Shown in pieces: positions 1 through 63,084 of a stretch of DNA of 64,000 bases (the stretch's first letter is position 1; the number at the start of each line of letters is the position of its first letter). The notes under the pieces were generated by a model that saw only the letters and a list, made by a program, of their open reading frames with translations, searched no databases and was not told the DNA's origin. Position numbers and translations under genes: made by a program. Location of the stretch: contig NC_068993.1 of the NCBI RefSeq assembly GCF_001194135.2, forward strand, positions 59,432,935-59,496,934. The letters run 5' to 3'. Source of the stretch: Octopus bimaculoides (taxonomy: Eukaryota).

Positions 1-300
1 GTACATGGCTCGCACAGCTCTCACTAACCATTCTTCTATCCCAAGTTTCCTCATTGACCACCAGATAAGGGATCGGGGGACCCTGTCAAAGGCTTTCTCC
101 ATGTCAACGAAAGCCAGGTACAGAGGTTTATCCTTAGCTAGGTATTTCTCCTGCAACTGTCTCACTAGAAATAAGGCATCAGTAGTGCTTTTACCTGGCA
201 CGAACCCAAACTGCATCTCATCTAAATTGATTCGCTCCCTAATTAGTTGGGCTATGACCCTCTCTGTAACTTTCATAACCTGATCTAACAGCTTGATGCC
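1..300 (-). mobile_element. RTE-clade LINE ORF2 fragment (reverse transcriptase N-terminal part)
   Basis: Minus-strand translation contains ...LQEKYLAKDKPLYLAFVDMEKAFDRVPRSLIWSMRKLGIEEWLVRAV..., a typical RTE-type RT motif. The plus ORF 5..283 is its antisense shadow. Confidence 0.85.
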
Positions 301-849
301 TCTGTAATTATTTGTATGAAGATAAAATAAAATAAAATAATTGTCCAGCAACTAAAGATTTTAACTGACGACTAAAATACATTTTAAATAATTTAAAGTC
401 ATTCAAAGGTAATTAAAAGATATATATATATTTGAAATGGTCTTTTACTTCCCTCAACAGGTACAAGTTCATAATAAAGCCGTCTTCCACAGGTAAAATC
501 CAAATACATCCTGAAAAAAGTTGTCTCTTCTTGCAAAAACTTTCGAAAGTTCATTTAAGCACACCGCTCAAAAACAACACACACAAGTATCTATGGCCAT
601 TTCAGGAGTTCACTACTGTAGTTCAATTACACTAAGGTGCAATCCAGCAATGACCCCTTCATCAGGATAACATTGCATTCACATCGGGTTTATGAAAAGA
701 ATGTAACTACATTCTCTAAATATATATTTGTACTTATATACACATATGTGTGTATTTGCACATGCATTGACACATATACTCATGTGCACACACACAAACA
801 CACATATATGTATCATAAATTTACACATACTCATGCATTTATTTTGTAG

Positions 850-939
850 TACCAAATGTAAATCCAGAAAGGGGATCAGGTCCTGCGATTAATTCTAGTA
901 ACGAACAAGATGGAGAAGACAATCAACCATTAATTAGTA
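850..939 (+). CDS. Predicted 90-nt phase-1 coding exon of an unidentified gene (xPNVNPERGSGPAINSSNEQDGEDNQPLIS)
   Basis: attttgtAG acceptor, GTAAGT donor at 940, open frame, length a multiple of 3, paralogous to the 90-nt exon at 2001-2090. Confidence 0.7.
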
Positions 940-1119
940 GTAAGTATGGACCCATTTTAAGGCTTTCTCTGTGTTCAAAATGAGTGTACTGAAAGAATCC
1001 TTACCATATCTGACGATGTCTTCCAGGTTGACTGGATATAGGGATAACAAAGTCCATAAAGGAAACCAGTCGACAATATATTTTATATCATAAATATATA
1101 CATACATCTACGAGGTGTA

Positions 1120-1765
1120 GATGTGGAAGTGTTCAAAAACCACCTGGCTGTTCGTACACATGCGTCATACAGTCTACCTTATTCTCTGAGCGAGAGGCCT
1201 TTGTCACCAGCAGAGGTAGCAGCTACACTTTCAGATCATCCACCCCAGCTACTGACTTTTTCACGTAGGTTACAGAAGCTGTCAACTACTTTTAGTTTTT
1301 CTCCTTGGAATGTGATAGAAGTTGTTCTCTGCACATTTCCAGTGTTTATTGCTCCTGAGCATCTGCCACATACAAAAACTATCTTCCTAGTTAGCCTTCC
1401 TTTGATATTGCTGCACCTCTTATGTGTCCATAGCTTGCACAAGGTACATCTTATAGAGTTTCTACCTACGCCTTTTCTACAGATTGAGAAGGGATTTATG
1501 GTTTGTCTGCCTTCCTACTTATTAAGACTTTGGTTTTAGCTAGGTTGACTCTAAGGCCCTTCGATTCTAATCCTTGCTTCCACACCTGAAACTTTTCCTC
1601 TAGTTCTGATAGTGACTCAGCAATAAGAGCAAGGTCATCAGCATAGAGGAACCCCCAGGGGCATTCTGTCTTGAATTCCTGTTATTGCCTGGAGGACTAT
1701 AATAAATAGGAGGGGTATGAGGACTGAATCTTGGTGGACCCCTATGGCCTCTTAGGCCATAGGCC
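1120..1765 (-). mobile_element. Degraded RTE LINE ORF2 fragment (RT C-terminal half)
   Basis: Minus strand reads GVHQDSVLIPLLFIIVLQAI, then a frameshifted YADD region, then CRCSGAINT...GEKLKVVDSFC...SSWGG and RLYDACVRTA. The last motif matches the RTE copy at 48.5 kb. Confidence 0.85.
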
Positions 1766-1926
1766 AACATGTCTTATGGTATGATGATATGGCTTAAAGA
1801 TATACTTTATGGTGAGAAACCCCAGGTAACCCTATAAACAGGCCTTCACCAGTTTTAAATATAGGCTGCTCTACATCTTAGAGTCTGCTTCTTCTCCCTT
1901 TTTATGTTTTTCTTTAAAAAAAATTT

Positions 1927-1969
<43 letters not shown>

Positions 1970-2000
1970 ATATATAATTTCATATATAATAATTTGATAG

Positions 2001-2090
2001 TGACAAGTGGAATTGAAGAATTAGGAACAAATTCTGATGTTAATTCTGGAGATGAAGCAGAAACAATCCTCAATCGACCATTAGATGCCT
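2001..2090 (+). CDS. Predicted 90-nt phase-1 coding exon (xTSGIEELGTNSDVNSGDEAETILNRPLDA)
   Basis: tttgatAG acceptor (weak pyrimidine tract), GTAAGT donor at 2091, open frame, aligns with exon 850-939 (E, G, NS, E and N-x-PL conserved). Confidence 0.65.
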
Positions 2091-2217
2091 GTAAGTATGA
2101 GTCAATTTCAATATCTCTCTCTATCTTCAAAGTGAATGTGCTGAAAGGGTGCTTTTAGTATTTCACAGATGTTGTAGACTGACAGGTCGTATGGGTAGCT
2201 GTGCTCAAATACTTTTA

Positions 2218-2251
<34 letters not shown>

Positions 2252-2514
2252 NNNNNNNNNNNNNNNNNNNNNNNNNNNNNNNNNNNNNNNNNNNNNNNNN
2301 NNNNNNNNNNNNNNNNNNNNNNNNNNNNNNNNNNNNNNNNNNNNNNNNNNNNNNNNNNNNNNNNNNNNNNNNNNNNNNNNNNNNNNNNNNNNNNNNNNNN
2401 NNNNNNNNNNNNNNNNNNNNNNNNNNNNNNNNNNNNNNNNNNNNNNNNNNNNNNNNNNNNNNNNNNNNNNNNNNNNNNNNNNNNNNNNNNNNNNNNNNNN
2501 NNNNNNNNNNNNNN

Positions 2515-2726
2515 CCGCCTGACTGGCCTTCGTGAGGGTGACACGTAAAAGCACCTACTATACTCTCTGAGTGGTTGGCGTTAGGAAGGGCATCCAGTTG
2601 TAGAAACTCTGCCCAATTTAGATTGGAGCCTGGTGTTGCCATCCGGTTTCACCAGTCCTCAGTCAAATCGTCCAACCCATGCTAGCATGGAAAGCGGACG
2701 TTTAACGATGATGATGATGATGATGA

Positions 2727-2727
<1 letters not shown>
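2515..2727 (+). mobile_element. SINE/LINE 3' tail family (…gagtggttggcgttaggaagggcatccag…aaacgatgatgat), 5' end in N gap
   Basis: Same sequence at 10232-10385 (+), 11585-11786 (+), 37000-37275 (-), 38870-39015 (+), 46585-47000 (-), 49562-49895 (-), 54716-55140 (-). Ends in a (GAT)n tail. Confidence 0.8.
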
Positions 2728-2766
<39 letters not shown>

Positions 2767-2951
2767 CAATAAGAAAATGAAGGGGAATAGGTGGTTTTCA
2801 TCAACTTGCAGACATTGTATTGTGTCAGTTTACCTGTTTATTTATTAACTAAGAGGACAATAACAATATACAAACACATGTGGCATATTATGTCATATCA
2901 GTAATTAAAAAAAGACATCTAGTGACCTAAAATGGGACAATGACTTACAGC

Positions 2952-3331
2952 TGTTTCAGTCTAGGGGTGACATGCCTCAATTCTGTCCGTATAACTCCAG
3001 TAGGCTGAAGTAATTGATAGATGAAATGGATGAAATAGAGGTACATGGATGATTCTCTTGGCCTCTTCAGAGATTTTATAAAGTTCATGAAGTTAATTTA
3101 AAATATCCAAATATAAACATATAAAAACCATAATATATATGTGAGTTTTTACGATTTTTTATATGTTTATATTTGGATATTTTAAATTAACTTCATGAAC
3201 TTTATAAAATCTCTGAAGAGGCCAAGAGAATCATCCATGTACCTCTATTTCTTCCATTTCATCTATCAATAACTTCAGCCTACTGGAGTTATACGGACAG
3301 AATTGAGGCATGTCACCTCTAGACTGAAACA
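2952..3331. repeat. Near-perfect long inverted repeat / foldback (MITE-like), arms about 175 bp, loop about 30 nt
   Basis: tgtttcagtctaggggtgacatgcctcaattctg…aaacatataaaa is mirrored by atatgttt…cagaattgaggcatgtcacctctagactgaaaca with few mismatches. Confidence 0.9.
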
Positions 3332-3566
3332 TGCTAATAGTGTCTCCCCTCTCTAAGAATGGGACATGGTTCTGAGTGTATATTATCAGATACTATTTAT
3401 TTAGTAAATTATTGTATGCATACATAGACTCCTAGACATCTGTACACATATTTATATATACATTTACACAGACACACACAGACACACACACACACACACT
3501 TCAATATACTGTCGCACATTATATTTTCATTTCCTTACAATATTTTGTTTTGTTTTGGTTTTACAG

Positions 3567-3593
3567 ATGCTGCTGGAAACACTCCTATAAATG
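3567..3593 (+). CDS. Predicted 27-nt phase-1 microexon (xAAGNTPIN)
   Basis: Strong tttggttttacAG acceptor and GTATGA donor; paralogue at 6422-6448. Confidence 0.7.
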
Positions 3594-3727
3594 GTATGAT
3601 TTTCTTTTTACTATTATAACGCTTTCCAATGTTCTCTTTGTTGTTGGTTGTCTGTGAGTCAGCCTATATCAAGTAGGTTCATGGTCAAAGACACTGAAAC
3701 TTTTGCATATTGTATTTTCAGAAATTC

Positions 3728-4110
3728 AGGAGTGGCTCTGTGGTAAGTAGCTTGCTTATGAACCACATGGTTCCGGGTTCAGTCCCACTGCGTGGCACTT
3801 TGGGCAAGTGTCTTCTACTATAGCCTTGGGCCGACCAAAACCTTGTGAGTGGATTTGGTAGACGGAAACTGAAAGAAGCCCATTGTATATATGAATATAT
3901 ATATGTGTGTTTGTGTTTGTCCCCCAACATCGCTTGACAACCGATACTGGTGTGTTTACGTCCCCGTAACTTAGTGGTTTGGCAAAAGAGATCGATAGAA
4001 TAAGTACTAGGCTTACAAAGAATAAGTCCTGGGGCCGATTTGCTCGACTAAAGGCAGTGCTCCAGCATGGCCGCAGTCAAATGACTGAAACAAGTAAATG
4101 AGTAAAGAGA
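3728..4110 (+). mobile_element. tRNA-head SINE (ggagtggctgtgtggtaag family)
   Basis: A-box/B-box-like head (tggtaagtag…ggttcagtccc), internal TA/TG microsatellite, tail aaacaagtaaaagag. Other copies at 4215-4581, 11058-11468, 42437-42730, 63085-63336. Confidence 0.85.
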
Positions 4111-4214
4111 ATTATTTTGGGATCTAATGCTTTGTCTCATTTTCTTTTAGGGATATTTGGTTACTATTTCTAGCAAGTTGAATGACTGTATAAAGACTTC
4201 TTTAGTGACACATA

Positions 4215-4581
4215 CTCTTTTACTTGTTTCAGTCATTTGACTGTGGCCATGCTGAAGCACCGCCTTTAGTCGAGAAAATCGACCCCAGGACTTATTCTTT
4301 GTAAGCCTAGTACTTATTCTATCGGTCTCATTTGCCGAACCGCTAAGTTGACTCATTTTTGACAAACACAGACACACAAACAGATACACACACATACATA
4401 TATATAAATACATATATACGACGGACTTCTTTCAGTTTCCGTCTACCAAATCCACTCACAAGGCTTTGGTCGTCCCAAGGCTATAGTAGAAGACACTTGG
4501 CCAAGGTGCCACGCAGTGGGACTGAACCCGGAACCATTTGGTTGGTAAGCAAGCTACTTACCACATGGCCACTCCTACGCC
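4215..4581 (-). mobile_element. tRNA-head SINE, inverted relative to the copy at 3728-4110
   Basis: Reverse complement of the neighbouring copy, about 100 nt away. Confidence 0.85.
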
Positions 4582-5269
4582 TACATATCCAGAATTTATG
4601 TTATATTCCAGCTTTTGTGATGGCAATGGTTTAAGGATTAAATTCTAGCTTTTATTAAATTTACCTGAACTTCAATATGGAAACTAAATTTTTAAATTTA
4701 TATAGATATATTTAATCATCTTAGACATTGATTACCCTGGACTACAATGTCCAATGTGATGTCTTCTTTCTTTTAGGATGGTAATTGAACAAATGAACTG
4801 TTTTACTTCATACTTATCTAGGAGGGAACAAGGCAGGCATTTTGTAGTTGACCGACCTGCTAAAAATAGCAGTGAAATATGTTGGATATTACATTCAGTT
4901 GTCTTAGGACAAATCAGATATGTAGGTAGATGTTTTCAAAGACAAGATCTTTAATCATAGGTCTACTCAACCAGGTTTTATGTGGAATTAAACATTAACC
5001 ATATTTATCTACTTCAAATCTCAGGGATATTTGTCTTCTCACTTTAAATATCATTTGAAATATATTTTCATTACTCTGAAATTCTGAAATTACTATCTTT
5101 TTTTGCATTTCTGCCTTATTTTCTTTTTTATTTATAAGTGTTCCACCTTCCCCTTGTAAGTTACAAAATTTACTCCTAAATAATATATTACACATAGATT
5201 GTCATTATGTCTTCTTTTCATCTTTATATGTCGGCCACAGCCTATCAACACAGACCACATTATTTGGGT

Positions 5270-5425
5270 CTGGATCACATTCTTCAGATGTGAACTGCAC
5301 TCTTCCAATGTGGTGGGTCACAATCTCTCAGATGTAGATTGCAGTCTTTAGATGTGGATCACAAGCCTCAAGTGTAGATCATAGTTGCTGCATGTAGATC
5401 AGTCTTTAAATGTGAATCACAGTCT
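5270..5425. repeat. Degenerate ~21-nt minisatellite (gatgtggatcacagtctttag)
   Basis: Tandem degenerate copies; a longer paralogous array lies at 7410-7780. Confidence 0.75.
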
Positions 5426-6098
5426 TTATATTCCCTTTTCCTTCTGTTCTTTGTAATTTGTTATTTTTCTTTTATTTCCACTATTCATACAATTTTTTTT
5501 TTAGCTTAACTTGCTTGTATACATAACACTGTTAGAAAATTTTTATTTTTCTTCTGTCTTTGCTCATTAAGTGTTATTTCCTTTTTGCTTCTATCTAAAA
5601 ATCAAATGAAATGGACTACTTTTCCCTTCGAACTTTGCTTTTGTGACCTGGACATCAATGGTTTGAAACTGACCTTTTTTTCCATTACATTTCAGACAGA
5701 TTCAGCACTGAGTTGCTGAAGCAGAAATATCATTATAGCAAATATTCTCTTCAAAACCAATGACTGACTTGTCAGTTGCTTGACTTTAACCACTTTAGCA
5801 TGTCCTTTTGTGACTGACAAAATGTACATCTCTGATCATGAGCAGAAATAGTGGTGGGAGCATCATAGCCATGTGTTGGGAGGGATTCTTTGGGGTTTGA
5901 ATAAAAATAACAAAAGTAAAGTTTGACAGAAATATTAGCCATATTTCATAATTTTTAGGGGTAGACAAATAAGAAATAACAGTTGCTACCCAAGGGCAAA
6001 AATTGTCTTACACATTGTAATGCATTCTTGTTTCCATGTGTGCAGGTGTTGTTATCAATTGCAAATCTAATTAATTTTTTTGCTTTTATTTTTTTTAG

Positions 6099-6113
6099 AT
6101 GAAAACAATTTGT
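6099..6113 (+). CDS. Predicted 15-nt phase-1 microexon (xENNL)
   Basis: Long T tract plus tAG acceptor, GTAAGT donor at 6114; preserves frame with neighbouring exons. Confidence 0.6.
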
Positions 6114-6421
6114 GTAAGTTTCAATTTATTCCATTAAGTGTTTATGCATGTTATGTGGTGTGACTGCGTACATTGCGATTGTGTATGTATTTGTGTTGTC
6201 AGTATTATATATTTGTTGTACTTGTGCATTGTGACAATATGTATTTGTGTGGTTTGCATATATATCGCTAGCCTCTGCACATTCTTTTTTTTCTCTCCTT
6301 GTTTCTTTCTGTGTTCCTTTCTGTGGAAGAGCGTAGGCTCGAAACGTTAAAGACTTTTTCAATTCCCGAGCATTATACATATGTATATTTTCGTTTTCTA
6401 ATGATTTTTTTGTTTTTTCAG

Positions 6422-6448
6422 ATGATGAGGGCAACACTCCTTTATCTG
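6422..6448 (+). CDS. Predicted 27-nt phase-1 microexon (xDEGNTPLS)
   Basis: ttgttttttcAG acceptor, GTATGA donor; exon and downstream intron are paralogous to 3567 onward. Confidence 0.7.
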
Positions 6449-7409
6449 GTATGAATTTATTTTATTATTATCGTCCCTTTTTAATGTTCTCTTTGTTGTT
6501 GTTTTGTTGCAGGTCTGCTCTAATCAAATAGATTTATGGTTAAAAGCATGTCATTCATATTATATTATCAGACTATTTATTTAGGAAACATGTCTGTCAT
6601 TACTTCTTTTTTAGATGGTGGTGTATTATTATAGAGAGATTTAATTACTATTTCTAGCAAGTTGGGTGACTGTGTAAAGCATCTTTAGTGACACTTCAGC
6701 TTTTATTGTGAATAGTAATGATTTAAGGATTAAATTTTGGCTTTCTTTCATTAAATTTTCCTGAACTTCAGTATGAAAACTAGGTTTTAAAATTTATATA
6801 GACACATTTAATCATCTTAGACAATGGATACCTTGGACTACAATGTTCAATGTGTCTTCTCTCTTTTTAAGATGGTAGGGCAGGATTAAGCTGGTCTACA
6901 ATTTATGTGACAACCCGACAAGTTTTCAAATATATTAGTTTTCACTTAGTCTGAAGGAATGAACTGTGTTTTACTTCGTATTTACCTAGGAGGGAACAAA
7001 GCAGGCATTTTGTGGTTGACTGACCTGCTAAAAGTAGCAGCAGAATTTGCTGCACATTACATTCAGTTGTCTTAGAAAAAGGACAGAATGGATAATGTAG
7101 AACAGAAGTTTACAAAGAGAAAGTACTTGATCACAGGTCTACTCAGCCAATTAAACATATTTATTTGAAATGTCTGATATTTATATTCCTCTTGTATACC
7201 ATTTGTAAAACATATTTTCATTACTCTTCTGAATATTCTGGAATTACTATTTTACTTTGTATTTCTATTTTATTTTATTCAGATAATCTATTTAATTTCT
7301 TTCTTTATTTTCAGTTCCATTATTTTCTCCAGATTCACTCCGTAAGTGACAAAATTTATTCCTATATAATAAATTACATATAGATGTTCACTATGTATTA
7401 TAATCAGTT

Positions 7410-7780
7410 TTAGATGTGACTCACAATCTTTCAACACACATCGCATTATTAGGGTCTGAATCACATTTTTCATATGGAGATCGCATTCTTCCAATCTGAA
7501 TTGCAGTCTTTAGATGTGAATCACAAGCTTCACATGTAGATCATAGTTGCTGCATGTGGATCAGTCCTTAGATGTGGATCACAGTCTTTACGTGTGGATT
7601 TTAGTCTTCACATGCAAATCACATTATTGAGATGGGGATTACATCATTCAGGCATGTGTGACATTATCCAACTCCATATATCACAGTTTTTACATATGGA
7701 TTGCAGTTGTTAGATGCAAATCATTGTATTTTGATCTGGATTCATTTCTTCAGATACATATCACAGTCTTTAGATGTAGA
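7410..7780. repeat. Degenerate ~21-nt minisatellite array
   Basis: Repeated gatgtg(g/a)atcacagtcttta units. Confidence 0.75.
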
Positions 7781-7800
7781 TGACATGTGGAGCACACTTA

Positions 7801-8470
7801 TTAGACACAGATTACATTAGTGAGATGTGTATCAAGTATGGATTGGAAGGTCGCCTCATCGCTAAAATCAAGCCGATCATCAAATCCGTCATCTTCCAAC
7901 TTTTCTTGCATTGCAATGCAAAAGTCACAGCAAGCTGGTTTATCAGTGTCCTGCAACTGTTGGACTAACTGTAGCTTGTAAGGTGTCATCCGCAGTCGTC
8001 TTTTTAAGATACGCCAAACTGTTGTTGTAGGAAGCTGAAGTTCCCTACTGGCTCTTCTGATCGATTTACGGGGGCTCTGCTCGAAGACAGTTTGAATTCG
8101 CTCAACTGTATCATCTGAAGTTGAGGGGCATCCCGTTCTCTTAGCTGGGTACAAACACCCATCCTTCATGAATTTACCATTCCATCTCAATATGGACTTC
8201 CTATCTGGTGCCTCTTTTCGGAATTTTGTGCAAAATGCACGTTGAACAAGTGTCCATGATTCAGTTTTTGCAAATTCAAGGACGCAAAACTCCTCTTCTG
8301 GTTGAGTGAACGCCATTACTGGATCTGAAAAAAATATGAAAAAATCATTAGCATTACAAAAAAACTTAATGAATTTAGCTTTAAAATGGTATCACTTCCA
8401 TCTTACTACCAATCATAGTCCAGCAGATATGTGGACTTGAAATGTGCCCAAGACTTCTGGAACACTGTAT
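7801..8470 (-). mobile_element. Tc1/mariner-superfamily transposon remnant (N-terminal HTH to first catalytic Asp, FSDEATF), 3' truncated
   Basis: ORF 7801..8316 has HTH motifs (…RKSIRRASRELQLPTTTVWRILKRRLRMTPYKLQLVQQL…FSDEATF). A TA-CAGTGTTCC-type terminus lies at about 8468 on the minus strand. Confidence 0.85.
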
Positions 8471-8817
8471 TATAAAAAGAATGATATTTTATATAATGTG
8501 GTCCTAGATACAACTTTAATGAAAGCAAAATAGTTGGAACAGTTTTGATGATATCCCTCCTAGTTTAGGGGTGACTTGGTTAAGCAAGATGATCCAAGGT
8601 CACAAAGTTTCTCAAATAATGATCATTCAGTTGAAAAATATGTATTGTCAGCAATTTAGAAGCTTCACCCAAATTATTCTACAGCAATATTAAATATGTT
8701 TTAAACCGCTATATATAATTATTCATGGATAGAATGAATTCTGTCTACTGCCCGTTATTGTAAATGAGTATTTATATTTTATTTCTCATTTCTTCTTTTT
8801 TTTTTCCTTTTTTACAG

Positions 8818-8830
8818 AAAACCTACACCA
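8818..8830 (+). CDS. Predicted 13-nt microexon (phase 1 to 2; xNLH)
   Basis: Very strong pyrimidine tract plus tacAG acceptor, GTAAGT donor at 8831. Confidence 0.5.
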
Positions 8831-9354
8831 GTAAGTTGTTAATTTTATCATATCTCTCTCTCTCTCTCCCCCTCTCTCTCTCTCTCCCTCTCTCTCTGGA
8901 ATAGTCTTCTTAACTATCTTGTATAAATTATTAATCCTCACTATGCTGGTGAAATTTTTACTAGTAATGTAACGTACTAACCATATGCAAATCAGTTCTC
9001 AGAATCTTTTTCTATTGGTCAGTGAAAATAAAATGTAAATGCTACATCATGTGAAATCTTGAGGATTTTAGAAAGTATTCCCACTATCAAAAATGAGTCA
9101 ACTTGGTTCCTAGGTGTACAACTAAATATTCTCAGTTCCCACTCTGTAACGTTTTATTATGTCATGTGATGTTACTATGATCTTTTTTGTTTCATACCAC
9201 CACAGAGTCAGGGCATTTGTGACAGGTGAAAGGAAGGAAATAGATATATAATAGTAATACTCATTATCTGGGTGATGATTTGCTGGACAAGTGACCATGC
9301 TTGAGAAGACCCGACAAGCCAAGTGAAACCACAGTCATGGTTGATGCCAGTACC

Positions 9355-9590
9355 GTGTTTGTTGGCACTCCGTCACTTACGACGTCGAGGGTTCCAGTTG
9401 ATCTGATCAATGGAACAGCCTGCTTGTGAAATTAACATGCAAGTGGCTGAGCACTCCACAGACACGTGTACCCTTAACGTAGTTCTCGGGGATATTCAGC
9501 GTGACACAGTGTGACAAGGCTGACCCTTTGAAATACAGGTACAACAGAAACAGGAAGAAAGAGTGAGAGAAAGTTGTGGTGAAAGAGTAG
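9355..9590 (-). mobile_element. SINE (family with head ggcgcaatggcccagtggttagggcag), 5' truncated
   Basis: Reverse complement of the 3' part of the copy at 25688-26036; a third copy is at 50104-50357. Confidence 0.8.
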
Positions 9591-9937
9591 AGCAGGTGTA
9601 TATACACATACATGTATGTATGTAAATACTACACATTTATACACATACACTGAAAATCAAACATATCCACACATAAGCATCCACATACTTCCACGTGAAG
9701 GTTCATAGCTTAGTAGATAGTGTATTTGGCTCATGATTTTAAGGGAGTGGTACCAAAATATTTCCTCAAAAATTAATTTCATCTTTAAATCCAAACTTTG
9801 TCTTATATCTTGTTTCAGCCACTGGGTTGTGGTCATGCTAGAGCACTGCTTTGAAGAGGTCTTTTTTCTGTTTTGTTTTGTTTTGTTTTTATTGTTATGA
9901 ATTTATATCAATTTTCTTTTTTCATTTTCTTTTACAG

Positions 9938-9956
9938 AATCGAAAACAACCATTAA
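9938..9956 (+). CDS. Predicted terminal coding exon segment (xIENNH-stop), AATAAA at 10031-10036
   Basis: Strong ttttcttttacAG acceptor at 9937. TAA at 9954-9956 is in frame after the 13-nt exon, and a polyA signal follows. Confidence 0.45.
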
Positions 9957-11057
9957 ACCAATGCAAAGTCCATTTTTTTCAATTTAGCTCAAATGTAAAC
10001 ATGAAGTGCCTGCTCTACATGATGATCTTCAATAAACACTGAAAAACAAAGTCGGCTGTGATAATCTTTCTACTAGTGACTTGTTGGGACTCATTATTTC
10101 GTTATGAAACTATAACAAAGACAGTTCTGTGTTCTATTGTGTTAGCAGTGCTATTACATCATTTGTTAAGGTTATCTATACAGATATTCGATAGAAATTA
10201 TAACCAGCACTGATTTTGTTACAACATCTCTACACTCTCGGAGTGGTTGGCATTAGGAAGGGCATCCAGCTGTAGAAACTCTGCCAAATCAGATTGGAGC
10301 CTGGTGTAGCCATCTGGTTCACCAGTCCTCAGTCAAATCGTCCAACCCATGCTAGCATGGAAAGCAGACGTTAAACGATGATGATTTTGTTGCAATATTT
10401 CTTGTTTACATCTCATGTCCCAGATACAAAACATTGTAACAAAAATAAGTGTTGGCTATAATTTCTATGGAATGTCTGTAGAGATAACCTTCAAAGAAAA
10501 ATCCTTCTATTGTTTTAAACTTTTTTATGAATGTAATGACACCTTGTTAAAACATATTCTATTTATTTTAGACACATTGTTGCTGATACATTGTCCCACC
10601 CATTATACATTATACATACACTGTGTGGACCAAACTCCTAAACTAGCCTCTGTCCTTTCAGAACTTTCCAAAATCTCTCTCTCTCTCTCTCTCAATCTTT
10701 AGAATGTAGTATGTACCATTCTCAAGAAAAGCAATCTCCCCATCACTACCACTCATCTACCCTTTTTAACATCTCAAAAGTGATGGGAATATTATTGCTA
10801 TCAGATCTTACCAAACCATTCCAACCAATGACAGCATGGAAGATGCATGTCTTAAATGATGATGATGATGATTCATATGTTTTCCTCTAAGCAAGCACCA
10901 GCCCACAGCCTCAAGGCATTGGACTGAAGGAAATTGAAACTGCAGTTGTAACATTAATATTATTTCTCTAACTCTACACAAGAACCTGCAGCCTCCAGGC
11001 ATGCAATCCGAAAGATCTTTTTCTTTCCAGAAGCTGGAAATATTCATATATACAAAT

Positions 11058-11229
11058 AGGCGTAGGAGTGGCTGTGTGGTAAGTAGCTAGCTTACCAACC
11101 ACATGGTCCCGGGTTCAGTCCCACTACGTGGCATCTTGGGCAAGTGTCTTCTACTACAGCCTCGGGCCGACCAAAGCCTTGTGAGTGGATTTGGTAGACG
11201 GAAACTGAAAGAAGCCCGTCGTATATATG

Positions 11230-11260
<31 letters not shown>

Positions 11261-11468
11261 ATGTTTGTATGTGTGTGTTTTTCCCCCCAACATCGCTTGA
11301 CAACCAATGCTGGTGTGTTTATGTCCCCGTAACTTAGCGGTTTGGCAAAAGAGACCGATAGAATAAGTACTAGGCTTCTAAAGAATAAGTCCTGAGGTCG
11401 ATTTGCTCGACTAAAAGGCGGTGCTCCAGCATGGCCACAGTCAAAAGACTGAAACAAGTAAAAGAGTA
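11058..11468 (+). mobile_element. tRNA-head SINE, full length
   Basis: Matches 3728-4110 over its whole length. Confidence 0.85.
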
Positions 11469-11984
11469 ATACATGTAAGTTTTTTTTAAAAATCTTTTAT
11501 AAACACTCAGTAATGTGAAATGTTAAGGTTATAAACTACAACATTTCTATTTGTTACATATTGGTTTAACCACTAATTCGATGACTGGCACCCGTGCCAG
11601 TGGAGCGCTAACAGCACTATCCGAGCGGGATCACTGCCGGAGTGGTTGGTGTTAGGAAGAGCATCCAGCTGTAGAAACTCTGCCAGATCAGATTGGAGTC
11701 TGGTGCAGCCATCTGGTTCGCCAGTACCCACTCGAATTGTCCAACCCATGCTAGCTGGAAAGTGGACGTTAAATGATGATGATTGCCAGTCATCCGATCA
11801 TGATCATTATGAATGTACACAGATGCACATATCGATAAATAGCATTAAATAAATACGGTACAAATATTTTGTAACTGAAAGGCCATTGTTTTGACATCAA
11901 TAAATTGGAGTGCCATTATAATTGTATAATGTACTTTTCTGGAAACTGTTGTTTTTTTTTGTTTTTTTCTATCATTTTACCATG

Positions 11985-18353: not shown

Positions 18354-19214
18354 CTATACTGTACAAATACATTTGTGCTTAATTAAACGGTTACTGTGGG
18401 AGAAGAATTTACCACAGCTTTCACAATGATATGGTTTTTCTTTAGTATGAATACGTTTATGGACAGTTACAGCAGTACTTTGGGAGAAGGATTTACCACA
18501 GATATTACACTGATATGGTTTTTCGCCAGTATGAATACGTTTGTGTCCCTTTAACACATTACTTTGATTAAATGCTTTACCACAGATATCACAATGAAAT
18601 CGTTTTTCTCCAGTATGAATGCGTTTATGAGCAGTCAAGCCACTATTTCGTGGGAATGATTTACCACAGAAATCACACCAATATGGTTTCTCTCCTGTAT
18701 GAACATGTTTGTGAATAGTTAACTCATCATTTCGAGAGAATGATTTGTCACAGATATCACAGTGAAAAGGTTTTTCTCCTGTATGAATACGTTTGTGTTT
18801 AATTAACTGGTTATTTTGATTGAATGATCTACCACAAAAATCACAATGATATGGTTTTTCTCCAGTATGAATGCGTTTGTGATCAGTTAAGTTAGTACTT
18901 TTAGAGAATGATTTACTGCACATATCACACTGATATGGTTTCTCTCCTGTGTGAATACGTCTGTGTGTAGTTAAAATATCTCTACGAGTGAAAGATTGAC
19001 CACAGATATCACATTCATATGGTTTCTCTCCTGTATGGACACGTTTGTGAATAGTTAGCTCATCAGTTCGAGAGAATGGTCTACCACAGATATCACAGTG
19101 ATATGGTTTCTGTCCCGTATGAATACGTATATGAGTTGTAAGATGACCTTTTGTAGTGAATGATTTTTCACAAATATCACACTGACATAAAGACTTTGCT
19201 AAGTTTTTTGCCAT
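18354..19214 (-). CDS. C2H2 zinc-finger protein ZNF-2 (286 aa, 10 fingers)
   Basis: Intact ORF with TGEKPY-linked fingers; C-terminus nearly identical to ZNF-1. Confidence 0.95.
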   Translation of the reverse strand: MAKNLAKSLCQCDICEKSFTTKGHLTTHIRIHTGQKPYHCDICGRPFSRTDELTIHKRVHTGEKPYECDICGQSFTRRDILTTHRRIHTGEKPYQCDMCSKSFSKSTNLTDHKRIHTGEKPYHCDFCGRSFNQNNQLIKHKRIHTGEKPFHCDICDKSFSRNDELTIHKHVHTGEKPYWCDFCGKSFPRNSGLTAHKRIHTGEKRFHCDICGKAFNQSNVLKGHKRIHTGEKPYQCNICGKSFSQSTAVTVHKRIHTKEKPYHCESCGKFFSHSNRLIKHKCICTV

Positions 19215-19799
19215 TTCTTAAGAACAAAAGAAAACCAAAATCAATCTTTTAAATCATTTCACCATCATTTTCCTTCTTTCTCCACAAAATATGGATATTT
19301 CACTTGCTTCTCTTTTTATAATTTATTTGTAACAAATATTCCTTAAATATATTTCCAATACCTGTGATTTTTAGAAACATCTGAAGATGTTCCAAAGTCT
19401 TTAATAAATTTATCTATTTAGAATGCAAAATTAGTTTGTACTTATTCCAGACAGTGACTTACACAAATGTTTTGTAATAATCTTGACTAGAATCAAAGAA
19501 ATTGCCCATAATTCTCCTGATTATATAAATATTATTATATTATTCTGTATAACATCCTTTGCCTTCAAAAACCAGTTTCATCAAGGACCTGAAATGATAG
19601 AGAAACAGTATAAGATATAAAGAATAATTAAACTGTAGAGAATCACCAAAAATTTACATTTCTATGGTGATAAATTTTAGAATACAACTCAACTGAGATG
19701 CTTTAAGTATCTAGGAGAATGGGATATGGGCTAATTGACTGCATAAGAGTATTTCATACCCAGTATCAGGCACAGCAGCATCACTGCCCTCAATTTTAA

Positions 19800-20170
19800 G
19801 AGAAAGATGATGCAAACATTGTATACGTTATATAGATTAGAAAGAAAGAGAGAGAGAGAGAGAGAGTTGTAGCAAAAGAGTTTACATAGAAGCAATGTAG
19901 AAGTATCTAGTGAGAAAAAAAGACGACTGTACTTAGCATTTGTTGAGCTAGAGAGGCGCTTTGATTGGAGTTTTGATCTGGTGGTCACTAAGTTTGGAAT
20001 AAATGAATGATGCTTTGTGAGAGCTGCTCAAACCATGTACAGAGGGGCTGTCAGCAAAGTGAGAGTTAATAAAGAGTATAGCTATGAATTCAGTGAGAAT
20101 GTGGGATTGCAACAAGACTCAGTCTCCTCAAATCCATTTTGTCCATTATAGTCCTTCAAGCCATTACACA
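19800..20170 (+). mobile_element. Old degraded RTE LINE RT remnant in ZNF-2 intron 1
   Basis: Translates to RLYLAFVELERRFDW…VRAAQTMYRGAVSKVRVNKEYSYEF; homologous remnants at 44390-44600 and 51520-51750. Confidence 0.7.
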
Positions 20171-20343
20171 CTTCAATACCGCCTGCTCGTGTGATCCCAT
20201 TAAAATTGTTCACAGACTTCTTATTGCAGAATTCATAGTAGAATTAGAAGAGAAATTCCATGCAATGATGTAAAGCTTTGAATCGAAAAACCTCCAGCTG
20301 AATTTAGCGAAGATCAAAGTCTTAGTAAATATAAAGAATATAA

Positions 20344-20610
20344 TATCTTGAGAGAAAAGCTGAACATTAGAAGCATCAGTTGTGGCGTGCAAGAGAGACG
20401 ATTGCGCTGGTATGGACATGTGGTGAGAATGGAGGAGGATAGCTGCGTGAAAAAGTGCCACACCCTAACAGTTGAGGGAACCCGTGGAAGAGGTAGGCCC
20501 AGGAAGACCTGGGCTGAGGTGGTGAGGCAAGACCTTCGTACATTGGGCCTCACCGAGGCGATGACTACTGACCGAGACCTTTGGAAATGTGCTGTGCGTG
20601 AGAAGACCCG
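20344..20610 (+). mobile_element. Young 5'-truncated RTE LINE 3' end (runs into N gap)
   Basis: LREKLNIRSISCGVQERRLRWYGHVVRMEEDSCVKKC…GRGRPRKTW is the RTE ORF2 C-terminus; nearly identical to 48670-48793. Confidence 0.9.
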
Positions 20611-21215
20611 NNNNNNNNNNNNNNNNNNNNNNNNNNNNNNNNNNNNNNNNNNNNNNNNNNNNNNNNNNNNNNNNNNNNNNNNNNNNNNNNNNNNNNNNNN
20701 NNNNNNNNNNNNNNNNNNNNNNNNNNNNNNNNNNNNNNNNNNNNNNNNNNNNNNNNNNNNNNNNNNNNNNNNNNNNNNNNNNNNNNNNNNNNNNNNNNNN
20801 NNNNNNNNNNNNNNNNNNNNNNNNNNNNNNNNNNNNNNNNNNNNNNNNNNNNNNNNNNNNNNNNNNNNNNNNNNNNNNNNNNNNNNNNNNNNNNNNNNNN
20901 NNNNNNNNNNNNNNNNNNNNNNNNNNNNNNNNNNNNNNNNNNNNNNNNNNNNNNNNNNNNNNNNNNNNNNNNNNNNNNNNNNNNNNNNNNNNNNNNNNNN
21001 NNNNNNNNNNNNNNNNNNNNNNNNNNNNNNNNNNNNNNNNNNNNNNNNNNNNNNNNNNNNNNNNNNNNNNNNNNNNNNNNNNNNNNNNNNNNNNNNNNNN
21101 NNNNNNNNNNNNNNNNNNNNNNNNNNNNNNNNNNNNNNNNNNNNNNNNNNNNNNNNNNNNNNNNNNNNNNNNNNNNNNNNNNNNNNNNNNNNNNNNNNNN
21201 NNNNNNNNNNNNNNN

Positions 21216-21261
<46 letters not shown>

Positions 21262-22499
21262 AAGAAATGAAATACTGAAAACGGCAGAGTTTCGAAATAG
21301 CAATCAGTTTAATTAACAATCAAAATAACAATCAGTACGATTTAGCAATCAAGATAGAAAAGAACACACAATTAGGGGTTAAAATATTAGAAGAGAGAAG
21401 ACAAAAAACTTTTTTCTGTATCGTAATTCAAAGAATTGGGAGACTTTTCAATTAGTCTTCTTATGTTTTGCTCTTTTCATTCCCGAAGAGGTTTTACGAA
21501 AATCTGTTTTGCAAATATTGTAAATAGTTTAAGCATGATAAATACTCACTTCTACTTTTCTTTTATGTATCGTTGACACAGTCGACTAATAGCATGAGAA
21601 GAAGATCATCCGAGGAAATCGTTACGGTGGATTGTTTAACGAAGGTGGAGAAATTAAGAAAGACATTGTTTATAATAAATAGAAAGGAAATATGGATTAA
21701 CTCAGAGATTTATTACTAACCTCAGTTTCGTAGCCATTCCGATAAAAGTACGATTTAACTAGTGTTTTTAGGTAATAAAAAGTAAAGAATAATTAAAACT
21801 TAAATGCAATATGACTTCAATCATGGCTTTATCTGGGCTAAACAACTATAGCAGCAATGTTCTTGCCCAGCACTCTAAAGATAGCGACTGAATTCCCTCA
21901 AATTACACCGTTTGGTCTTGAACCAGAGGATCTAGTCTTTCTCATTCACAAAATGAGCGCATACTTAATTTAGCTGAGATTGCTTTCAAATTTGGTGTAT
22001 CGATGCATCTCTGAATTTTGATTACGATCAACCGAATACTTTATCTCGTAAGTTAAAGAATCTGATGTTATTTGGAATTAAATTTGGGAAATTTGGGTAA
22101 TTTTAGCCAATCAACAGACAGCGTGGCATTAGCAGCTTGTTACCATGACAACAGCACGCTGTGTTGTCTGTATTGCTGTTGTCTATGCTGATTTTTCACA
22201 CTTGGTTCTTCACACCACGAGTTTCTTTTCATCCACGGGGTTTTGTTTTAATTTTTCTGTGTCTCAGTATATTACATATTTTTCTGTGTTAGTATTTTTA
22301 CCTATTTTTCATTTCGGATATCTTTGGGACTCATTGACTCAGCTGGATTTATGATTTCACGAGGTTAATTCTGTTCATAAAAATTTAAATTAGAAGTATC
22401 TTTTGAACCGTTAGCTTCACATTTCAACAGCTTAACTGAAATTTAGCCCACATAACAGGAACTGAGAGGGATATCGTGGAACAAAGAAACTGTGGGTTT

Positions 22500-22790
22500 T
22501 TTTTTTTTTTTTTCTTCACAGAGTTTACTTCTGTTTTTACATTAAAAATGAAAATGATGGAAAATGCAGTACATTTCCATCATTTGATGCTCTATTATAT
22601 CTGCAATGGTAAAAAAAAGATATATGTAGTTTATGGAGTTAGTGCTCTGTCAGGCAGCAAGTTAAATATGTTGGCAGACAGGAACCACTCATGGTGTAGG
22701 TATGGTCATATATCCTGCCATAACTTCTGTCCAAAGCCATACCGTGACCATGCTACACATGACAGAGCAACGTATTCAACAGCAACGGGT
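22500..22790 (+). mobile_element. Mariner-like 5' remnant (paralogue of the 16.9 kb copy)
   Basis: MKMMENAVHFHHLMLYY in ORF 22476..22823; DNA similarity to 16870-17100. Confidence 0.6.
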
Positions 22791-23649
22791 GACTGTAAAA
22801 GTTTGTGCAAAGGTTTGAAATAACGTTGATTCAAAATTGAAACAGATAATATTTAATATAAAACACTGTCAAAACTTTGAAGAAAATGGTAAAAATCAAA
22901 TTAGAAAATGTGCAACCTTCATCATACATAGATCAAGTTAGTGAATTCTATGCGTAATTTAGAGCTAAAATTAGTAAAAGACTTGATTGGATGTTCCAAA
23001 TATAAAAGAAGAGAAAAATGATTTAAGAGTAAACAAGTTTTATTTAGATTTCAAATCCTTACAAATATCCACAAAGATTGGTGCAGCCAGAACTCTGAAA
23101 TTTGAGATTTTCACTTGAAATGACAAAATGCATGAGATAATGTGGTCCACCACATTGTAGCACTGACAATGGCCATAAAAACATTGTTGGGGTTAATTCA
23201 AAGATTACTCCACACATTTTGTATTTAAGTAAAGTTTAATATTACAATGATACTTGCAAATTAAAATTTAGTTCTGCAAAAAAGTCATTAAGGAATCATA
23301 TTATAAATAAAATTATAGATATTACCAACAACAGAGTTAGTCCCTTGAGGGAATAAATACAAGAATACACCTGAATGCACATACTATACATATCAAAATA
23401 GATATACAATCCATTTATCTTGTTATAATGATGAAATACTGTAGCTTATGGCTTGTATATACTTATTTAGCATCACACATTGATATGAATATAAACATAT
23501 ATAATACTTTTTAGATGATTACTACAAATATCAGTGACCTGGTTTGTCTCCTTTCAAAATACAAACGTGACTGGTTGAGAGAATGACATAGTTTTATACA
23601 TTTGTGCTTAGTCAACTGATTACTGTGAGAGAATGATTTACCACAGTTG

Positions 23650-24438
23650 TCACAGTGATATTTCTCTGGTATGAACACGTTTATGTACAGTTACAGCAGT
23701 ACTTTTGGAAAAGGATTTACCACAGATATCACAATGATAGGGTTTTTCTCCAGTATGAATACGTTTATGTCCCTTTAAGATGTAACTTTGATTAAATGCT
23801 TTACCACAAATATCACAATGAAATGGTCTTTCTCCAGTGTGAGTGCGCTTGTGGGTAGTTAACTGATAATTTCGAGGGTATGATTTACCACAGGTATCAC
23901 ACTGATATGGGTTCTCACCTGTATGAATGTGTTTGTGGGCAATTAATTCAGCATTTCGAGAGAATGATTTGTCACAGATATCACAGTGATAGGGCTTTTC
24001 TCCTGTATGAATGCGTTTGTGCTTAATTAACTGGTTATTTTGATTGAATGATTTACCACAGAAATCACATTGGTATGGTTTTTCTCCAGTATGAATGCGT
24101 TTGTGATCAGTTAAGTTAGTACTTTTAGCGAATGACTTACTGCACATATCACACTGATATGGTTTCTCTCCTGTGTGAATACGTCTGTGTGTAGTTAAAA
24201 TATCTTTACGAGTGAATGATTGACCACAAATATCACATTCATATGGTTTCTCTCCTGTATGGACACGTTTGTGAATAGTTAGCTCACCAGTTCGAGAGAA
24301 TGCTTTACCACAGATATCACAGTGATATGGTTTCTCTCCTGTATGAATACGTACATGAGTAGTAAGATGACCTTTCGTAGTCAATGACTTTTCACAAATA
24401 TCACACTGATACAAAGTCTTTCCTGAGTTTTTTGCCAT
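23650..24438 (-). CDS. C2H2 zinc-finger protein ZNF-3 (262 aa from the MAK start, 9 fingers; 10th lost to frameshift)
   Basis: The paralogous start MAKNSGK is at 24438; the upstream in-frame codon at 24459 is probably not used. An out-of-frame vestigial finger [19 protein letters not shown] follows the stop. Confidence 0.92.
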
Positions 24439-25045
24439 TTTGTAAAGACAAAAAAACAACCTTTGTCTTCAAAAAATTATAGATATTGATGATGCTTCTG
24501 ATGCAAAATAATTTTTTGATACCAGTCTCATCAAGGACCTGAAATAATAGAGAAACAGTATAAGATATAAAGAATAATTAAACTGTAGAGAATCACCAAA
24601 AATTCACATTTCTATGGTGATAAATTGTAGAATACAACTGAACTTATCAAGAGTATCACATTATTTCAAACATAACAGAGCAGAGATATACATATAATAG
24701 AGATACATATCATATCATGCCACAGAAAAGAAATGTCTCCTTGTCTTAATAGTTGGAAGCAAGGGTCACTATCAAGGAAACAACATCATTTGTTTCTAGT
24801 CCTCCATAAACACATGGCTGGTTAAGGGAAATATATAAGTGAGGGTTGGTGACAGGAAAGGGGCTGTGAAAAAATCTGTCCAAAAGAATAATGTCTATAT
24901 AATCATGGAAAGGTGAGCAATGATACAGTGAGCAGGGCAGCGAGGACAAGATTGAGGAGTGAGATATAAGCATAGAGCACAGTTTCGAAATAGCAATCAG
25001 CACTTCATCGGGAAAGAAAAGAAGATGCAATTGGGGATGAAAATA

Positions 25046-33029: not shown

Positions 33030-34472
33030 TCATGTAAGCTTACAGATGTGAACAGCTAAATCACCAGGTTGAGAGAAGGATTTAGCACAGATATTGCAGT
33101 AATATAGTTTTTCCCCCATATGAATACATTTGTGCTTAGTTAATAGCTTACTGTAGGAGAATGATTTTCCACAGATCTCACAATGATATGGTTTTTCTCC
33201 AGTATGAATACGCTTGTGAACAGTTACAGCAGTACTTTGGGAGAAGGATTTACCACAGATATCACAAAATGGATTTTCTTCAGTATGAATGCGCTTGTGC
33301 TCAGCTAAGGAATTACTTCGCGAGAATGATTTACCACACACATCACAATGAAATGGTTTGTCTCCGGTATGAATGCGTTTGTGATCAGTCAAGGAATTAC
33401 TTCGAGAAAATGATTTACCACAGATATCACAATTATATGGCTTCTCTCCTGTATGAATACGTTTATGTACAGTTACAGCAGTACTTTGAGAGAATGATTT
33501 ACCACAGATGTCACAATGATATGGTTTTTCTCCAGTATGAATACGTTTATGACCACTCAAGGAATTATTTCTAGAGAATGATTTACCACAGATATCACAC
33601 TGATATGGTGTTTCTCCAGTATGAATACGTTTGTGATAAGTTAAAGCATTACTCTGTGTGAACGATTTACCACAGATATCACAATGATATGGTTTTTCTC
33701 CAGAATGAATGTTTTTATGTCCCTTTAAATCTTTACTTCGAATGAATGATTTACCACAGATATCACAGCGATATGGTCTTTCTCTGGTATGAATAAGTTT
33801 GTGTATTGTCACAGCAGTACTCTGTGAGAATGCTTTCCCACAAACATCACAATGAAATCGTTTTTCTCCAGTATGAATACGCTTGTGTCCAGTCAAGGCA
33901 CTATTTTGAAGGAATGATTTACCACAGATATCACATTGATATGGTTTTTCTCCTGTATGAACGTGTTTGTGAGCAGTTAACTCATCGTTTCGAGAGAATG
34001 ATTTGTCACAGACATCACAGTGATAAGGTTTTTCTCCTGTATGAATACGTTTGTGTTTAATTAGCTGATTGCTTTGATTGAATGATTTACCACAGAAATC
34101 ACAATGATATGGCTTTTCTCCAGTATGAATGCGTTTATGATCAGTTAAGTTAGTACTTCTGGAGAATGATTTACTGCACATATCACATTGATATGGTTTC
34201 TCTCCTGTGTGAATACGTTTGTGTGTAGTTAAAATATCTTTACGGGTGAATGATTGACCACAGATATCACATTGATATGGTTTCTCTCCTGTATGAACAC
34301 GTTTATGAATAGTTAACTCACCACTTCGATAGAAAGTTTTGCTACAGACACCACAGTGATATGGTCTCTCTCCTGTATGAATACGTATGTGAGAAGTTAG
34401 ATTACCTTTTGAAGCTAAAGACTTTTTACATATACTGCACTCATACGAAGCTTTGTCTAAGGTTTTTGCCAT
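33030..34472 (-). CDS. C2H2 zinc-finger protein ZNF-5 (480 aa, 17 fingers; longest member)
   Basis: Intact ORF including the two terminal fingers that are lost in ZNF-4 and ZNF-9. Confidence 0.95.
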   Translation of the reverse strand: MAKTLDKASYECSICKKSLASKGNLTSHIRIHTGERPYHCGVCSKTFYRSGELTIHKRVHTGEKPYQCDICGQSFTRKDILTTHKRIHTGEKPYQCDMCSKSFSRSTNLTDHKRIHTGEKPYHCDFCGKSFNQSNQLIKHKRIHTGEKPYHCDVCDKSFSRNDELTAHKHVHTGEKPYQCDICGKSFLQNSALTGHKRIHTGEKRFHCDVCGKAFSQSTAVTIHKLIHTRERPYRCDICGKSFIRSKDLKGHKNIHSGEKPYHCDICGKSFTQSNALTYHKRIHTGETPYQCDICGKSFSRNNSLSGHKRIHTGEKPYHCDICGKSFSQSTAVTVHKRIHTGEKPYNCDICGKSFSRSNSLTDHKRIHTGDKPFHCDVCGKSFSRSNSLAEHKRIHTEENPFCDICGKSFSQSTAVTVHKRIHTGEKPYHCEICGKSFSYSKLLTKHKCIHMGEKLYYCNICAKSFSQPGDLAVHICKLT

Positions 34473-42436: not shown

Positions 42437-42730
42437 ACCAGTCCCACTGTGTGTCAACTTGGGCAAGTGTCTTCTACTATAGCCTTGGGCCGACCAAAGC
42501 CTTGTGAGTGGATTTGTTAGATGGAAACTGAAAGAAGCTCGTCCCATATTTATATATGTATGTGTGTGTTTGTCCACCCCCATCACTTGACAACCGATGC
42601 TGGTATGTATGTTTATGTCCCTGTAACCTAGCAGTTTGGCAAAAGAGATAGAATAAGTGCTAGGCTTACAAAGAATAAGTCCTGGATTTGATTTGCTTGA
42701 TTGAAGGCAGTGCTCCAACATGGCCGCATT
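42437..42730 (+). mobile_element. 5'-truncated tRNA-head SINE
   Basis: Matches the body of 3728-4110. Confidence 0.75.
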
Positions 42731-62594: not shown

Positions 62595-63084
62595 ATTTAT
62601 AATGTTTAAATCGATATTAAATATTTCCAGGACGGATCTTCGGAATAACTGTGGTTTCTTCACGGGAAATGAAAAAGGAGCGAAGAATTGGGAAGGTTTT
62701 TCTTTTTCCTTCATCATTCAATATTTTATGATAGTCCGATGAAATTTCTATCAGAATCGTAATTTCCTTTGTATCAAACACAGGAATACTACGAAAAAGT
62801 GGGGTGGTTTTCGAAATAGCAGTCACTAATAAAATGGAATTTCTCGAAGATTTTTTTGTTATTTTTTGGTATTTTTACCTTTTGTAGAATCTCAAAGTAG
62901 ATGTAAATCTCTTTAAAAAAGAAAAAAGAAAAATATTCCGTATCTTTGCTTTTTTGAAATGTCTCACTCTCTCTGTCCTTCTCAATTACGATTTCGGAAT
63001 ATCTGCCATGATTCTCATGAATTAATTTTCTTCCCAATTTCCTGTCTATTCTGAAATATTTACACAAGTCTGGTACTTATTATG

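Follow-up and report, generated by a model that had tools for sequence, protein, structure and literature searches.

Tandemly duplicated exons and microexons at the probable 3' coding end of an Octopus bimaculoides gene

The locus and the exon chain

The DNA analysed was a 64,000-nucleotide (nt) stretch of the Octopus bimaculoides genome (RefSeq assembly GCF_001194135.2, contig NC_068993.1, positions 59,432,935 to 59,496,934, forward strand), referred to below as the window; window position x equals CM046613.1 59,432,934 + x, in plus orientation, in GCA_001194135.2. The placement on chromosome CM046613.1 comes from an exact match to a zinc-finger ORF (open reading frame) of the window. The window is AT-rich (31-40% GC), contains many repeats and has eight assembly gaps. 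Its first 10 kb carry the subject of this report, a chain of seven short plus-strand segments proposed in an initial annotation, made by reading the DNA, to be the spliced 3' end of a gene encoding the acidic tail of a receptor. Exon coordinates are given as window positions. The exons and the signal that follows them are as follows.

850-939, plus strand: exon 1, 90 nt, phase 1-1, PNVNPERGSGPAINSSNEQDGEDNQPLIS; its paralogue, exon 2, has the same aligned borders.
2001-2090, plus strand: exon 2, 90 nt, phase 1-1, (M)TSGIEELGTNSDVNSGDEAETILNRPLDA; weak acceptor.
3567-3593, plus strand: exon 3, 27 nt, phase 1-1, YAAGNTPIN; paralogue of exon 5.
6099-6113, plus strand: exon 4, 15 nt, phase 1-1, DENNL; counterpart of exon 6.
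6422-6448, plus strand: exon 5, 27 nt, phase 1-1, YDEGNTPLS.
8818-8830, plus strand: exon 6, 13 nt, phase 1 to 2, ENLH(Q); donor GTAAGT.
9938-9956, plus strand: terminal coding exon (exon 7), 19 nt including TAA, (Q)IENNH; the coding sequence of a public gene call ends here.
10031-10036, plus strand: AATAAA, 75 nt past the stop, followed by a TGTG-containing stretch.

All seven segments were reproduced where they had been proposed, with AG before each and GT after each but the last. Joined, they make 281 nt in one open frame of 92 codons followed by TAA at 9954-9956 (last base of the stop codon at CM046613.1 59,442,890), and the peptide, the stop and the downstream AATAAA agreed exactly with those first described. 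The AATAAA is weak evidence alone, the hexamer being expected about once per 850 nt at the base composition found here.

The lengths of exons 1-5 (90, 90, 27, 15 and 27 nt) are all multiples of 3, and these exons are therefore all phase 1-1. Their description as symmetric and skippable held: removal in silico of any one of them kept the frame. Other combinations gave other outcomes in silico: exon 4 spliced straight to exon 7 ran into an immediate TAA, omission of exons 3 and 4 together gave a clean product, and omission of exon 6 gave a different ending of 16 residues. Four of the exons, at 13-27 nt, count as microexons (27 nt or less). Those of 27, 15 and 27 nt are symmetric, and the 13-nt one sets the frame of the last exon.

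Splice sites

Splice sites were scored with simple weight matrices. The acceptors of exons 3-7 scored 6.4-12.3, that of exon 6 (12.3) being the strongest in the window; AG sites scoring at least 8 numbered 13 of 3509 on the plus strand and 3 of 3468 on the minus strand. The donors were GTAAGT in four cases and GTATGA in two, good on the intron side and lacking the exon-side AG consensus. The initial annotation had called most of the sites strong, which applies to the acceptors of exons 3-7 but not to that of exon 1, which is mediocre (0.8), to that of exon 2, which is poor (-8.7), or to the exon side of the donors. The trinucleotide TGC occurred within the last 20 intron bases before exon 4 only.

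Open candidate exons of 9-100 nt with an acceptor of at least 6 and a donor of at least 0.5 numbered 16 on the plus strand (9 of them in the first 9 kb) and 6 on the whole minus strand, counts in which, owing to the duplicated exons, the entries are not all independent. T exceeds A on the plus strand over 4-10 kb of the window, an excess that fits a transcribed sense strand and also raises acceptor scores.

Coding signal

The pattern of the exon chain exceeds chance in its splice-site pairs, its acidic segments, its composition and its codon bias. Among the 120 open segment-frames of 60-150 nt bounded by AG and GTAAGT (128 kb, both strands), a net acidic charge of at least 4 was found solely at the two 90-nt exons. 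The joined peptide contains 18 D+E and 2 K+R, with no K and no F, and has a net charge of -16. Controls consisted of 5000 concatenations of random open segments with lengths matching the exons. Net acid was +16 in the tail versus -4.4 +/- 4.0 in the controls, a value reached in 0 of the 5000, and K+F was 0 versus 12.4 +/- 3.7. Within the tail, G made up 35% of codon position 1 and 5% of codon position 3 (position 3 of the zinc-finger genes in the window, 8%), and synonymous codon choice was closer to the usage of those zinc-finger genes than in 95% of the controls.

The public gene call

A gene called on the plus strand of the window in GCA_001194135.2 has a coding sequence (CDS) ending at window 9956, that is, at the same TAA, and a product of 169 amino acids (aa); it extends upstream past window 3918. 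The frame that ends in the TAA at 9954-9956 is open for 33 codons, and the AG at 9938 is the only one there with a polypyrimidine tract. With 9938 as the only credible acceptor, the terminal exon of the public call is almost certainly this 19-nt one, read in the frame described here. So short a final coding exon would be an odd choice for a purely ab initio predictor. The chromosome assembly of O. bimaculoides is described in PMC9068888, a paper in which the gene-calling procedure for this species is absent.

A product of 169 aa corresponds to 169 x 3 + 3 = 510 nt; less the 281 nt of the joined exons this leaves 229 nt, which is 1 modulo 3, as the phase of exon 1 requires. No ATG-started exon supplying the missing 229 nt was found in 1-849, and the start of the gene therefore lies outside the window, with about 77 residues left upstream of the tail. 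The gene end had been presented as hidden, and it is invisible to a bacterial-style list of open reading frames (ORFs), but it is otherwise ordinary and probably covered already by the public gene model. Nothing on this locus was found in the literature on octopus microexons.

Elsewhere in the window, a public 509-aa call at 18354-24438 on the minus strand (593-6677 of L001, a locus that is the exact reverse complement of window 3918-25030) spans two separate zinc-finger ORFs (23650-24459 and 18354-19214). Two tandem genes have thus apparently been fused in it, which calls for caution on the quality of gene calls here.

Tandem duplication and conserved intron blocks

Exons 1 and 2 lie in duplicated units. 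Aligned with their downstream introns, the two units scored 95, against about 27 for shuffled sequences; the exons have about 60% identity, show no insertions or deletions within their 90 nt and share an identical donor, GTAAGTATG. A second duplication covers the microexons: 3550-5428 aligns with 6405-7590 at 70-82% identity, with repeat insertions between, so that exon 3 pairs with exon 5 (20 of 27 bases, 74%) and exon 4 with exon 6. The acceptors of exons 4 and 6 are offset by 2 nt (TAG|AT versus ACAG|), and the upstream unit therefore measures 27 + 15 = 42 nt and is in frame, as would be expected if both units were translated in one messenger RNA (mRNA). A four-way alignment gives a weak hint that the 27-nt exons originated from the 3' portion of the 90-nt exon.

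Short intron blocks are conserved at the same distance past the donors of both exon pairs.

974-995, plus strand: intron block, 35 nt past the exon 1 donor; partner of 2126-2147.
2126-2147, plus strand: intron block, past the exon 2 donor; partner of 974-995.
3628-3646, plus strand: intron block AATGTTCTCTTTGTTGTTG, 19 nt, 35 nt past the exon 3 donor.
6483-6501, plus strand: second copy of intron block AATGTTCTCTTTGTTGTTG, 35 nt past the exon 5 donor.

A 22-nt degenerate consensus fits both copies of the exon 1/2 block; tested in reverse complement, it hits these two places and no others (0.02 expected). The AATGTTCTCTTTGTTGTTG block is identical at 19 of 19 positions in the two units, versus 74-82% for the surrounding duplicated sequence, and is better kept than the exons. 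All four blocks are UCUCU- or UGUU-rich, are preserved at least as well as the exons that they follow, and may be elements that control splicing. For the exon 1/2 block, the one block for which this was sought, no complementary docking sequence was found within the window.

An inverted repeat pair with arms 78% identical lies at 3728-4576, and members of the same family occur at 11057-11469, 42439-42734 and 63066-63342. The pair is found in the first but not the second duplicated unit and therefore arrived after the duplication.

The assembly gap in intron 2

2252-2514, no strand: assembly gap in the proposed intron 2, 161 nt past exon 2 and 1052 nt before exon 3.

With its flanking exons at 2001-2090 and 3567-3593, the gap interrupts no codon. 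The left edge of the gap is a (TA)n microsatellite and the right edge a repeat resembling a short interspersed nuclear element (SINE), cut at its 5' side; a second (TA)n follows that repeat at 2729-2764. Shorter copies of the repeat occur at 10230-10385 and 11640-11783, and near 54.9 kb and 46.7 kb there are longer copies, whose 5' side reaches at least another 250 nt. The simplest reading, which cannot be proved, is that a SINE inserted in a TA microsatellite was left uncrossed by the assembler. An exon could be concealed in the gap, such as a third 90-nt copy; no third copy of that unit was found in the readable sequence of the window.

Further candidate exons

461-492, plus strand: tentative extra upstream exon, 32 nt, phase 2 to 1; acceptor 9.4, donor CAG|GTAAAA 2.7.
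7315-7341, plus strand: tentative cassette exon, 27 nt, VPLFSPDSL; acceptor 6.5, donor 0.5, all frames open, frame kept.

The first of these may be a real upstream exon. The sole frame in which it joins exon 1 is open, and it would add ..YKFIIKPSST-V before PNVN. The second is probably not coding: its counterpart at about 5148-5164 has only 17 nt, and its composition is unlike that of the tail.

Motifs and homology searches

The tail is rich in N, E, D, S, G and P, contains no K, F, W or C, and has one N-x-[ST] sequon. The report of an N-x-P-[LI] motif at four exon ends was borne out, with copies near the ends of exons 1, 2, 3 and 5 (NQPL, NRPL, NTPI and NTPL) where 0.17 were expected in shuffled sequences. 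N-x-P-[LI] is the only element kept while the copies diverged.

The acidic dileucine pattern [DE]xxxL[LI] matched once, at DNQPLI. The pattern match first noted is therefore real but at chance level, since 16% of shuffles of the same peptide contain at least one (P = 0.16); it is not retained in exon 2, the paralogue, which reads ILNRPLDA. NNLY had been likened to a tyrosine signal, a comparison that failed: NPxY and YxxΦ gave zero matches in the tail peptide, whose tyrosines stand in the contexts NNLY, YAAG and YDEG.

The tail was assigned to no family. Searches with the joined peptide returned noise only from Pfam (best match Anophelin, E = 0.093, 13.2 bits versus a cut-off of 27) and from PDB sequences (a viral capsid chain, E = 0.6). 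An ankyrin repeat was considered for GNTPL and rejected, no ankyrin family being listed in Pfam even at E <= 10. A homology search with the same peptide against a 5.8-billion-cluster database without octopus proteins was empty. As a control, a zinc-finger query from the window returned vertebrate and arthropod proteins as best matches (at most 56% identity) and no cephalopod protein, while the paralogues within the window look much closer by eye. Because this control shows the database to be without octopus proteins, empty protein searches for genes of the window carry no weight. Exact look-ups of the unspliced ORFs at 5-283 and 1904-2158 gave no record, and none of seven ORFs of the window looked up in the same exact manner was in the collection.

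Interpretation

The segments are, in our judgement, likely to be the last coding exons of a real, spliced, plus-strand gene of O. bimaculoides that grew by tandem exon duplication and ends in an acidic tail. The structure of the gene end is shown by the sequence, as listed above. The rest of the gene would lie upstream of the window. One 90-nt exon was duplicated to two, as was a unit made of a 27-nt exon and a 13/15-nt exon, and in the upstream copy of that unit the acceptor moved by 2 nt, the unit then adding 42 nt with the frame kept. The product would have an acidic C-terminal region with a net charge of about -16. Three properties of this tail we infer: intrinsic disorder, which is presumed; a binding function, in which a single short linear motif, present four times and set in an acidic spacer, would act as an array; and alternative splicing, by which the symmetric exons would allow the motif copy number to be altered.

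Several points weigh against this interpretation. The acceptor of exon 2 is poor, and the junction of exons 2 and 3 spans the assembly gap, the link from exons 1-2 to exons 3-7 thus depending on the scaffold. Between the duplicates the exons are conserved no better than the flanking introns; any purifying selection on the protein is thus weak or confined to the motif. The public call was compared by its CDS end and product length, and its origin may be evidence-based or ab initio. The case for a gene end is drawn as a whole from sequence and from the position of that call.

A broader proposal goes further than a duplicated gene end: a protein restricted to cephalopods, carrying a splice-tunable N-x-P-[LI] array with one copy per symmetric exon or microexon, recently duplicated and with the conserved intron elements 35 nt past each donor setting the copy number. 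We regard it as doubtful.

The product could instead be a small (about 169 aa), lineage-specific, acidic secreted or extracellular protein, with a signal-peptide exon followed by phase 1-1 repeat exons; the tail would then make up most of the mature protein. Its public length is of this order, its tyrosines stand in an acidic context, and the best Pfam match, though non-significant, is to a small acidic secreted peptide family (Anophelin). Phase 1-1 exons are commoner in secreted and extracellular modules than in cytoplasmic tails, and the internal exons here are of that class. The Anophelin match is, however, far under threshold, the tail has no cysteines and a single sequon, the public call may be truncated, and the N-terminal 77 residues lie outside the view, so that a signal peptide is only presumed. 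A secreted protein of this kind is unlikely, if conceivable.

The paralogous exons might also be alternatives to one another, with exon 1 or exon 2, and unit 3+4 or unit 5+6, in any transcript, and never all of them in one mRNA. Their equal lengths and phases (90/90 and 27/27), the conserved intron block beside each paralogous exon, the immediate stop produced by joining exon 4 to exon 7, and the clean product obtained when exons 3 and 4 are skipped, are all consistent with such an arrangement. The window, however, holds no complementary docking sequence for the exon 1/2 blocks, the paralogous lengths are divisible by 3 and joint inclusion is tolerated, and the change from 13 to 15 nt makes sense only with both units in one mRNA. 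Strict mutual exclusion is a quite unlikely account of the duplicated exons.

The initial annotation had placed the tail at the cytoplasmic end of a membrane receptor, with DNQPLI as a sorting signal and NNLY as a tyrosine signal, both tuned by microexon skipping. The single [DE]xxxL[LI] match and the symmetric exons, which permit frame-preserving skipping, speak for this; an acidic disordered tail is compatible with a cytosolic domain, and the tentative exon at 461-492, if real, would add a basic and hydrophobic stretch (YKFIIKPSST) upstream. Against this stand the chance frequency of the dileucine match, the lack of both NPxY and YxxΦ in the tail, the conservation of N-x-P-[LI], which is no known sorting signal, and an exon phase more typical of extracellular or secreted modules. 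Sequence upstream of exon 1 beyond 849 nt lies outside the window, placing any transmembrane segment or ectodomain out of view, and the roughly 77 residues upstream in the 169-aa public product leave little room for them unless the call is truncated. The receptor assignment is therefore not upheld, and we consider it improbable.

It is also highly doubtful that the segments are chance or decaying pseudo-exons, or parts of a non-coding transcript, picked up through splice-like sites in T-rich sequence: exons no better conserved than introns between the duplicates, acceptor scores inflated by the T-rich plus strand, a gene call that may be ab initio and the want of a homologue in a database without octopus proteins point that way, but composition and codon-position bias are far from those of random open segments, the frame has survived two duplications and a 2-nt acceptor shift that restores it, the donors and N-x-P-[LI] are conserved while the rest diverged, and a 19-nt terminal exon would be unusual for an ab initio predictor.

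If the segments are a gene end, reading raw eukaryotic sequence can recover a true spliced gene end, including exons of 13-27 nt, and the fate of the receptor assignment indicates that functional labels taken from single short-motif matches are unreliable. The locus would neatly illustrate, on a small scale, how a disordered tail can grow by tandem exon duplication, a frame-restoring 2-nt acceptor shift included. Were the motif array alternatively spliced, the locus would lend itself well to studying how microexons arise in cephalopods; a splice-tunable array, if true, would be a young, still-growing case of microexon-coded interaction valency. The finding is otherwise ordinary and has no bearing on long-standing open questions.

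Comparison with known systems

Tandem exon duplication has reportedly been described in animal genes generally. The exons here resemble it in that neighbours are equal in length and phase and similar in sequence, with duplicated flanking intron; they differ from the typical case in that two different units, one of them made of two microexons, were duplicated next to each other at the extreme 3' end. Exons of 3-27 nt are said to be involved in the neuronal microexon programme of bilaterians. Four exons here, at 13-27 nt, fall in that range; three are symmetric, and they share very strong polypyrimidine acceptors, conserved flanking intron and a presumably disordered protein region with that programme, but there is no consistent UGC before their acceptors, and they are young paralogues rather than deeply conserved exons.

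Acidic dileucine signals of the form [DE]xxxL[LI] reportedly act in the tails of transmembrane proteins. DNQPLI fits the pattern; unlike such signals it is a single chance-level match, is not kept in exon 2 and has a membrane anchor that is only presumed. The PEVK exons of titin encode a disordered region with one exon per repeat. The present exons are likewise small and symmetric, each with one low-complexity repeat, and exon number sets repeat number; they bear no sequence relation to PEVK exons, however, and encode four motif copies in a context that is acidic and N-rich instead of P/E/V/K.

Repeats within and around the gene end

A reverse-transcriptase fragment of a long interspersed nuclear element (LINE) lies at window 1-300 on the minus strand (RVT_1, E = 2.6e-10), and a frameshifted later part of a reverse transcriptase lies in intron 1, at about 1100-1800 on the minus strand. 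Because their order is not collinear, the two LINE fragments flanking exon 1 are separate insertions.

A near-perfect 381-nt palindrome (94%), a foldback or an element resembling a miniature inverted-repeat transposable element, occupies 2952-3331, on the upstream side of exon 3 and about 240 nt from it. In the pre-mRNA this element would fold into a long hairpin; heavy adenosine-to-inosine editing of double-stranded RNA is a known trait of cephalopods.

The intron between exons 5 and 6 contains an intact 171-aa ORF (7801-8316, minus strand) that represents only the N-terminal, helix-turn-helix part of a transposase; its Pfam scores (HTH_32 and DUF4817) are sub-threshold.

Zinc-finger genes in the remainder of the window

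At least ten tandem, single-ORF C2H2 zinc-finger genes of 246-480 aa occupy window 13918-59453, on both strands, and have in common the N-terminus MAK..(K)S.Y.CDIC.KSF. The C2H2 zinc-finger family is expanded in coleoid cephalopods (PMC12513265), and the cluster in the window is part of that known expansion. Long antisense ORFs within the zinc-finger genes (for example 33161-33574, plus strand) are by-products of the repeats.

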